From Schmidtea nova (Eukaryota), in contig CM097883.1 of NCBI GenBank assembly GCA_044892505.1, positions 198,958,001-199,022,000 on the forward strand: a stretch of DNA of 64,000 nucleotides. The letters run 5' to 3'. Every line of letters begins with the position of its first letter. The first letter of the stretch is position 1. Of this stretch, positions 51,661 to 51,960 are shown in pieces. Below the pieces are notes generated by a model. That model did no database searches and was not told the DNA's origin. It worked only from the letters and a program-made list of their open reading frames with translations. Both the position numbers and the translations under genes were made by a program.

Positions 51661-51960
51661 TTATGAGCTCATTGGGTCACAATTTTTTGCAAAACAGGTT
51701 TTCAGTCCGCTTTCGCAGCTGGCTACACATTTAATGGAATCAGCGCTGCTTGAGTCTTTCTTTGCCGAGCACTCTTTATCACAGGCATATCCGGCATCCC
51801 AGCATTTAGCTCTGCAAATCGCTACAGTTTCTTTAGCATCGACTTCGCAATTGTAAAGAACGAATGCTACTACGAATAGAGAGAAAACTATCTAAAATTA
51901 TTAGAAAAAGAAAAACTCAGTTTTCTAAAGTTTGTTAAAAAGGATTCTTACTTTGTTCAT
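51661..51960 (-). CDS. Small secreted cysteine-rich peptide (79 aa; 8 Cys in the predicted mature part)
   Basis: Exon 1 51960-51952 (MNK), a 60-nt intron GTAAGA...TTTTAG, and exon 2 51891-51661. Product: MNKIVFSLFVVAFVLYNCEVDA-KETVAICRAKCWDAGYACDKECSAKKDSSSADSIKCVASCESGLKTCFAKNCDPMSS*. TATAAA lies upstream (about 52000) and AATAAA downstream (about 51610). Confidence 0.88.

Follow-up and report, generated by a model that had tools for sequence, protein, structure and literature searches.

A gene with a 9-nt coding mini-exon for a putatively secreted, eight-cysteine peptide with a predicted helical-hairpin fold in Schmidtea nova

Can a gene whose start codon lies in a coding exon of only 9 nt be recognized from DNA, and if so, what kind of product would it make? 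This question is raised by a locus on the minus strand of a 64,000-nt stretch of Schmidtea nova DNA (GenBank assembly GCA_044892505.1, contig CM097883.1, positions 198,958,001 to 199,022,000), referred to here as the window and numbered from its first nucleotide. An original prediction had placed at this locus a hidden two-exon gene for a secreted peptide with eight cysteines arranged as twin hairpins. Our analysis retains the gene and its eight-cysteine product and revises the fold. Taken as a whole, we consider it on balance probable that this is a spliced gene for a secreted peptide, that the peptide folds as a single hairpin with a four-rung disulfide ladder, and that it acts as a protein-binding ligand.

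The coding sequence reads as an ATG exon, a GT..AG intron, and a second exon, which upon splicing and translation give a precursor of 79 codons (Table 1). As had been proposed, this layout hides the gene from an open reading frame (ORF) list, because an in-frame TAG stands immediately 5′ of exon 2 and the region in which exon 2 starts offers no in-frame ATG, GTG, or TTG. Read without splicing, the frame of the ATG meets a stop after 11 codons. Base composition supports the exon/intron structure, with a GC content of 42% in exon 2 as against 22% in the intron and 28% in the flanks. The TATA box, the intron, and the polyadenylation signal of the original prediction were all found where it had placed them, and the intron is canonical. 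The TATAAA and AATAAA motifs, however, are weak evidence and add little, because both recur often in the AT-rich DNA of the window (1.3 and 3.05 occurrences per kb per strand, respectively). Further upstream of the gene, a 520-nt run of Ns starts 176 nt from the ATG, and a 142-bp self-inverted repeat (96% identity; 52657-52798) lies between the two N runs located there.

Is this arrangement more than a chance frame? Within the window, frames with at least eight cysteines in 50 residues are rare (2 among the 324 open frames with 50 codons or more), and an ATG followed by one to three sense codons and GTAA is found 45 to 165 nt upstream of approximately 1.8% of random positions. With exon 2 or the mature part as the query, as in all searches and in structure prediction, HMMER run in full against 1.84 billion cluster representatives yielded three relatives. 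P0003 is the closest (E 6.6e-9, 52% identity), followed by P0004 (E 1.6e-4) and P0005 (E 9.7e-4); each is an unnamed singleton and comes from an ENA metagenome assembly. Alignments A1 and A2 show the eight cysteines together with W12, G15, Y16, and L44 to be invariant in all four members, and the motif of the family reads K/R-C-W-D/N-x-G-Y-x-C. Pairwise comparison gave proportions of synonymous differences (pS) of 0.78-1.06, that is, saturated, versus proportions of nonsynonymous differences (pN) of 0.34-0.47, with the cysteine columns being retained via TGT/TGC switches. By this measure, purifying selection acts on the coding sequence in four lineages or more.

The same gene architecture is found on the contig from which the closest relative comes (L002; 29% G+C). 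Here, ATG AAG is followed by GTAAAA and a 92-nt intron (239-330) that ends in an in-frame TAG, after which exon 2 begins in phase with a hydrophobic leader; the prokaryote-style gene call had begun at an internal ATG. The shared mini-exon layout indicates that the intron is common to the two relatives, being placed after an ATG exon of 9 nt in the window and of 6 nt in L002. A TATA-like run is present ∼40 nt from the ATG of L002, at a distance similar to that in the window gene. Comparing the window with L002, we found no conservation of promoter or intron sequence. The remaining relatives show a different arrangement. In L001 (43% G+C; 9970-9979) and in L003/L004 (45-49% G+C; L003 424-437), the ATG directly follows an acceptor-like site (...TTCAG) and continues into a contiguous leader, which means either an intron in the 5′ untranslated region (UTR) or spliced-leader trans-splicing. 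We also considered a ciliate-type alternative genetic code; this was rejected, as standard stops end the transposase ORF of the window (see below) and the L002 gene ends in two consecutive TAA codons.

With regard to gene copies, no paralogues of the peptide were detected in the 64-kb window or in the fetched loci of the relatives, except for a truncated 5′ copy (leader plus first residues) just upstream of the intact P0005 gene (L003 202-300, L004 93-194). This copy is 76-79% identical at the protein level and points to tandem duplication at this locus in the organism concerned. Otherwise, the gene is single-copy in the 64 kb of the window and in 20 kb of L001, and the peptide locus with its flanks is unique within the window. 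Judged from the intact frame, the shared architecture, and the pattern of conservation, we take the locus to be a genuine and undamaged eukaryotic gene that is spliced and encodes a small peptide.

Additional searches did not extend the family. A word-index protein search with exon 2 gave no match, and the same search with the four-sequence profile returned the same three relatives only. No further members were found with the back-translated motif in JGI metagenomes, or in IMG/VR and GTDB genomes. Nine matches to a degenerate DNA pattern in the JGI data were rejected on account of stops around the motif and a missing second helix. The family may be larger than these four members, because ORF-called collections under-sample spliced short genes.

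Turning to the gene product, the precursor begins with MNK, followed by 13 hydrophobic residues and a short polar c-region, in which, as read by rule, V occupies -3 and A occupies -1. The hydrophobic core has a mean Kyte-Doolittle value of 3.14 over 11 residues, and each of the four family precursors opens with a hydrophobic stretch, after which small residues occupy -3 and -1. Both the secretory leader and the 57-residue mature part of the original prediction thus hold up, and the leader suggests that the window peptide would be secreted. The eight cysteines of the mature part are located at positions 7, 11, 18, 22, 36, 40, 47, and 52, which gives exactly the spacing of 3-6-3-13-3-6-4 that had been claimed.

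How might these eight cysteines be paired? AlphaFold2 run on the mature part alone predicted helices at residues 4-27 and 30-52, with a predicted local distance difference test (pLDDT) score of 82.6. With alignment A2 as input, the best model reached a pLDDT of 84.7 (81-85 across five models), and the helices spanned residues 4-24 and 30-52. That is, structure prediction returns two long helices, each with four cysteines on one face, compatible with a ladder of disulfides. In both runs, the helix is continuous through both X6 segments, with a pLDDT of about 90 there. Simple geometry points the same way: cysteines at i, i+4, i+11, and i+15 fall at 0, 40, 20, and 60 degrees on an ideal helix, and so occupy one face within 60 degrees. 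In addition, the positions of the paired cysteines add up to 58, 58, 58, and 59 in the window peptide, and the register is exactly palindromic in L001 and L003; an antiparallel ladder of four rungs calls for just such symmetry. In the family, prolines are found nowhere but in the central loop or the C-terminal tail, and the members differ in length only in that loop and in the last spacer. G15 and L44 occupy equivalent places at the interface, each four residues past the second cysteine of its helix.

Since the AlphaFold2 helices and the cysteine arithmetic agree, we propose that the mature peptide would form one antiparallel helical hairpin (helix ∼4-24, loop 25-29, helix ∼30-52), each helix displaying its four cysteines on one face. 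The disulfides would form a ladder of C7-C52, C11-C47, C18-C40, and C22-C36, and the facing contact between Gly15 and Leu44 would serve as a fifth, noncovalent rung. This corresponds to the four-rung form of the disulfide-stabilized helical hairpin (cystine-stabilized alpha/alpha, CS-alpha/alpha). One long hairpin with a four-rung ladder is the most likely fold and disulfide pairing. Ladder connectivity is general among helix-loop-helix peptides (bioRxiv 10.1101/2020.05.26.118075).

It is on this point that we depart from the original prediction, which had described a duplicated, twin-hairpin peptide. In such an arrangement, each CX3C-X6-CX3C half would form its own helix-turn-helix (C1-C4 and C2-C3; C5-C8 and C6-C7), the halves being joined by a 13-residue linker and derived from an internal duplication. 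The palindromic cysteine spacing within each half would fit such a peptide, as would the invariant Gly at the center of the first X6, to which Gly, Asn, or Thr corresponds in the second; the X12/13 segment is also the most variable and could be a linker. AlphaFold2, however, runs a continuous helix through each of the X6 segments where this arrangement needs turns, and the one-face placement of cysteines at i, i+4, i+11, and i+15 is explained by a continuous helix but not by a turn. Moreover, six residues would have to accommodate a turn together with the helix ends on either side of it. G15 and L44 occupy equivalent interface positions that face each other in the ladder, and the two halves show no sequence similarity beyond their cysteines (BLASTP E 0.71). 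We therefore regard twin hairpins as unlikely.

Does the single hairpin belong to a described family? In Pfam, the precursor matched no family at E≤10, and the four mature peptides gave only Toxin_3 (E 0.11) and DUF842 (E 2.1), each with one member and each insignificant and unrelated. A sequence search of the PDB with the single sequence returned no chain at E≤10, including the B-toxin and acrorhagin chains discussed below. With the profile, the PDB matches were insignificant, again without any B-toxin or acrorhagin chain at E≤10; they included the walnut vicilin-buried Jug r 2 hairpinins (E 0.32, 0.73, and 1.1), with the matched region limited to the central 28 residues. On the structural side, Foldseek comparison of the first model with the PDB placed 1VIB (B-IV), its best toxin-like neighbor, at rank 2 (template modeling score 0.57, root-mean-square deviation 2.3 Å over 48 columns, E 5.9) and the walnut hairpinins at ranks 11-12, and nothing significant was found in the viral library BFVD. 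Neither Pfam nor the PDB and Foldseek searches, then, gave a significant match to a described family.

The fold itself is another matter. Although the original prediction did not recognize the peptide, the four-disulfide helical hairpin has already been described: in B-IV and acrorhagin I, two helices are cross-linked by four disulfides (PMC11722136, PMC13608440). Counterparts in size are the B-toxins, that is, B-II and B-IV (1VIB) of the nemertean Cerebratulus lacteus, and the beta-nemertides. B-IV is a helical hairpin of 55 residues with four disulfides (PMC6410017, PMC11722136), and the beta-nemertides of Lineus have 57 residues and four disulfides (PMC5864730), so that this group, with 55-57 residues and eight cysteines, closely parallels the 57 residues and eight cysteines of the window peptide. 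The B-toxins are secreted, cross-linked helical hairpins, a likeness that for the window peptide would run via its predicted fold and putative disulfides; a sequence relation was not detectable in Pfam or among PDB chains at E≤10.

A second group comprises cnidarian peptides: acrorhagin I (U-AITX-Aeq5a, 6UX5), U-GRTX-Esi20/21 of an octocoral, which belong to the same fold class (PMC11896702), and Aeq5-like1/2 of Nematostella. All are small, secreted helical hairpins with three or four disulfides, and their sequences are very divergent. Some of them are found in neurons rather than venom tissue (PMC11896702; bioRxiv 10.1101/2020.05.28.121442), as with the neuron-expressed Nematostella peptides that have the acrorhagin cysteine pattern (bioRxiv 10.1101/2020.05.28.121442), which makes a signaling role as conceivable as a toxic one. 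Acrorhagin I has no sequence match to the window peptide at E≤10. One of its disulfides links a helix to the loop (PMC11722136), which may set it apart from the window peptide, all eight cysteines of which fall within the predicted helices. Its activity has been attributed to metal chelation by several His residues (PMC11722136), whereas the mature window peptide contains no His at all. The octocoral genes, moreover, are described as intronless, in contrast with the mini-exon of the window gene.

Other CS-alpha/alpha peptides, such as the scorpion kappa-KTx (hefutoxin-type) and the conotoxins of framework XIV (vil14a), are venom peptides that bind ion channels weakly (PMC11722136); they have 23-30 residues with two disulfides, and no sequence relation to the window peptide was found. 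Small Tim (twin-CX3C) and CHCH (twin-CX9C) proteins of mitochondria are helical hairpins of the intermembrane space, with paired CXnC motifs, two disulfides, and no secretory leader. All four members of the window family, by contrast, have a hydrophobic leader at the N terminus, and Pfam gave no match to Tim10/DDP. Our verdict is that the window peptide represents a new sequence family of an already known fold.

To ask what the peptide might do, we looked at where conservation resides. Average pairwise identity amounts to 49% in the helix 1 region (38% without the cysteine columns), 35% in helix 2 (20%), 27% in the loop (27%), and 17% in the leader (17%). On the predicted helix, W12 and Y16 sit beside the cysteine face and are spaced by one turn, with D/N13 pointing toward solvent. 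The net charges of the four members are +1, 0, -8, and -5. The B-toxins are strongly basic, whereas the window family ranges from neutral to acidic and has W12, D/N13, G15, Y16, and L44 as its conserved residues. The activity of the B-toxins depends on Arg-17, Arg-25, and an aromatic residue at position 30 (PMC6410017). Helix 1 conservation and charge together argue for a rigid scaffold with a specific binding stripe, not for a membrane-active cationic peptide, and membrane disruption by cationic charge is unlikely for the window peptide. Of the roles that the original prediction had put forward (toxin, antimicrobial, pheromone, or effector), the neutral-to-acidic charge thus speaks against an antimicrobial of the cationic, membrane-active kind. 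Instead, the peptide would most likely be a rigid, extracellular, protein-binding ligand that makes contact through the conserved aromatic/acidic stripe of helix 1 (W12, D/N13, Y16), its target being a receptor or channel, either of the animal itself or of another organism. A single copy, along with a mature part that is better conserved than the leader, leans slightly away from a fast-expanding venom family.

A defense peptide of the alpha-hairpinin type, acting on microbes or fungi, deserves consideration here, as the original prediction had linked the cysteine pattern to disulfide-stapled helix-loop-helix peptides. That link is borne out: alpha-hairpinins of plants and vicilin-buried peptides (EcAMP1, Luffin P1, Jug r 2) have CX3C-Xn-CX3C and also, as predicted for the window peptide, the helix-loop-helix and ladder pairing (PMC7191063; bioRxiv 10.1101/2020.05.26.118075), and the central CX3C-X13-CX3C of the window peptide (Cys 18, 22, 36, and 40) fits their motif C1X3C2-Xn-C3X3C4 (PMC7191063). 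Weak profile matches, to the walnut hairpinins (E 0.3-1.1), came from this central part alone, and a small, TATA-associated gene for a secreted product with a short leader would suit a defense peptide as well. Those matches are insignificant, however, and much else differs. Plant hairpinins have four cysteines in two disulfides, not eight cysteines, and are often basic, whereas a net charge of +1 to -8 is unlike that of typical cationic antimicrobials. They are seed peptides cut from vicilin or modular precursors, whereas the window precursor stands alone and holds one peptide. Finally, the feature that is conserved is the W-D/N-x-G-Y stripe and not amphipathicity. An antimicrobial role thus appears rather improbable.

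We consider it highly improbable that the peptide inhibits proteases through a basic P1 residue in the hairpin loop, in the manner of plant helical-hairpin trypsin inhibitors. The predicted loop of the window peptide does carry Lys-Lys, and some helix-loop-helix peptides inhibit trypsin (bioRxiv 10.1101/2020.05.26.118075; PMC7191063). Yet the loop is the least conserved segment of the mature peptide, the Lys-Lys is not conserved, and basic loop residues are not universal, with L003 having none; this argues against a loop-based inhibitor, as do the conserved positions on helix 1. Least credible of all is that there is no functional gene here but a chance, decayed, or transposon-borne frame: transposon remains are abundant in the region and TATA and poly(A) motifs are frequent by chance, but the frame is uninterrupted, neither the locus nor its flanks recur in the window, no other family member lies there, and three relatives on unrelated contigs keep eight cysteines and four further residues despite saturated synonymous sites.

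Several points weigh against our preferred combination of spliced gene, single hairpin, and protein-binding ligand. The exact splice junction draws on the architecture shared with one relative, L002. The alignment given to AlphaFold2 held four sequences only, and in the Foldseek comparison with the PDB neither model had a significant match, the second having none at E≤10. CX3C-X6-CX3C is itself palindromic, and the first X6 has the conserved Gly at its center, so that the cysteine arithmetic by itself would also allow two short hairpins. The known members of the fold class are basic toxins, and the window family is not basic; as to function, we purely infer it. Lastly, neither the protein nor the contig collection contained any of ten other ORFs of the window, including that of a transposase, and the protein collection is thus no guide to how rare the relatives are or to whether the window gene has been annotated.

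Table 1. Features of the peptide gene and its predicted product (window coordinates)
Feature	Coordinates	Strand	Remarks
TATAAA, possible core promoter	51993..51998	-	weak evidence; 33-38 nt upstream of ATG; sole TATAAA on this strand in 51400-52136
Exon 1, coding part	51952..51960	-	9 nt, ATG AAC AAA (MNK), then GTAAGA
Intron, phase 0	51892..51951	-	60 nt, GTAAGA...TTTTAG (GT..AG); position common with L002
Exon 2, coding part	51661..51891	-	231 nt, 76 codons plus TAA stop (51661-51663)
Signal peptide, remainder	51835..51891	-	hydrophobic core and c-region; predicted cleavage after 51835, rule-based only
Mature peptide	51664..51834	-	57 residues, 8 Cys, about 6.03 kDa, net charge +1
Predicted helix 1	51763..51825	-	mature residues 4-24; Cys 7, 11, 18, 22 with W12, G15, Y16; most conserved segment
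Predicted hairpin loop	51748..51762	-	mature residues 25-29; length and sequence vary among relatives
Predicted helix 2	51679..51747	-	mature residues 30-52; Cys 36, 40, 47, 52 with invariant L44
AATAAA, possible polyadenylation signal	51607..51612	-	weak evidence; 49 nt past stop

The remainder of the window is rich in transposons, with sequences of DUF4371 hAT-type, Tc1/mariner-type, and polinton-type elements and a weak GIY-YIG match. The transposase mentioned above is an uninterrupted 400-residue ORF of Tc1/mariner type (16554-17756, minus strand) with DDE_3 and helix-turn-helix (HTH) domains, the exact product of which is not in the collections. Two further minus-strand ORFs (1294-1686 and 4826-5785) carry DUF4371, as in hAT-type transposase-derived proteins. 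On the plus strand, a 147-residue ORF (23982-24425) matches DNA_pol_B_2 (E 2.8e-6; organellar/viral type B polymerase) and is probably a fragment of a polinton/Maverick-like element. A 69-residue ORF (56984-57193, minus strand) with a GIY-YIG match below the Pfam cut-off (E 0.0019) may be a remnant of a Penelope-like element, and an isolated 148-residue ORF with a Helicase_C domain (35801-36247, minus strand) seems to be a fragmentary DEAD-box helicase gene or pseudogene.

The second of the two cysteine-dense frames of the window lies at 12706-12876 (minus strand). It has nine cysteines in 57 codons, an ATG, a hydrophobic start, and a Cys/Arg-rich end that is GC-rich; it has no Pfam match and may be due to chance, part of it being TG-rich low-complexity DNA. 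A frame with repeated Q-C-D-Q-S-P (21288-21608, minus strand), which stems from an 18-bp tandem repeat present in 3.9 copies (21451-21520), gave weak, spurious tblastn matches to the peptide. Elsewhere on the minus strand, two identical 155-residue ORFs (29794-30261 and 30583-31050), 789 bp apart, form part of a larger tandem duplication that also contains 81-bp repeats (29864-30020, 30653-30809, and 31441-31692). Two exons of a conserved cellular gene (61875-61315 and 58101-57856, minus strand), approximately 3.2 kb apart, are 57-59% identical to two unnamed metagenome proteins and have no Pfam match; their motif may resemble the C-terminal part of VPS13. The spacing of these exons and the kinds of transposon present would fit an animal whose genome is AT-rich. 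Scans of the window for tRNAs and Rfam families gave no match.

What, then, would this peptide gene mean? One could go further and suppose that the four loci are the few visible members of a larger family, widespread among eukaryotes, of hairpins with four rungs and a neutral-to-acidic charge, which would be hormone- or pheromone-like ligands in endogenous or ecological signaling rather than toxins, with the W-D/N-x-G-Y stripe on helix 1 as the receptor site. Such a family would have gone unseen because a mini-exon, or an ATG right after a splice acceptor, defeats ORF-based and many gene-model callers. We offer this wider scenario as a doubtful, if conceivable, extension of our reading. The gene does not open a long-standing question. 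It does bear on four-disulfide helical hairpins, a small and recently recognized scaffold that serves peptide toxins and perhaps neuropeptide-like ligands as well; in the literature surveyed, structures of this form number two, those of B-IV and acrorhagin I. A third family, unrelated in sequence, acidic instead of basic, with another conserved surface and a clean palindromic cysteine register, would show how the scaffold has been reused. In addition, with its start codon in a 9-nt coding exon, the gene provides an example of how short genes for secreted peptides are missed by ORF lists, a case that bears on the mining of peptide genes from genomes and metagenomes.

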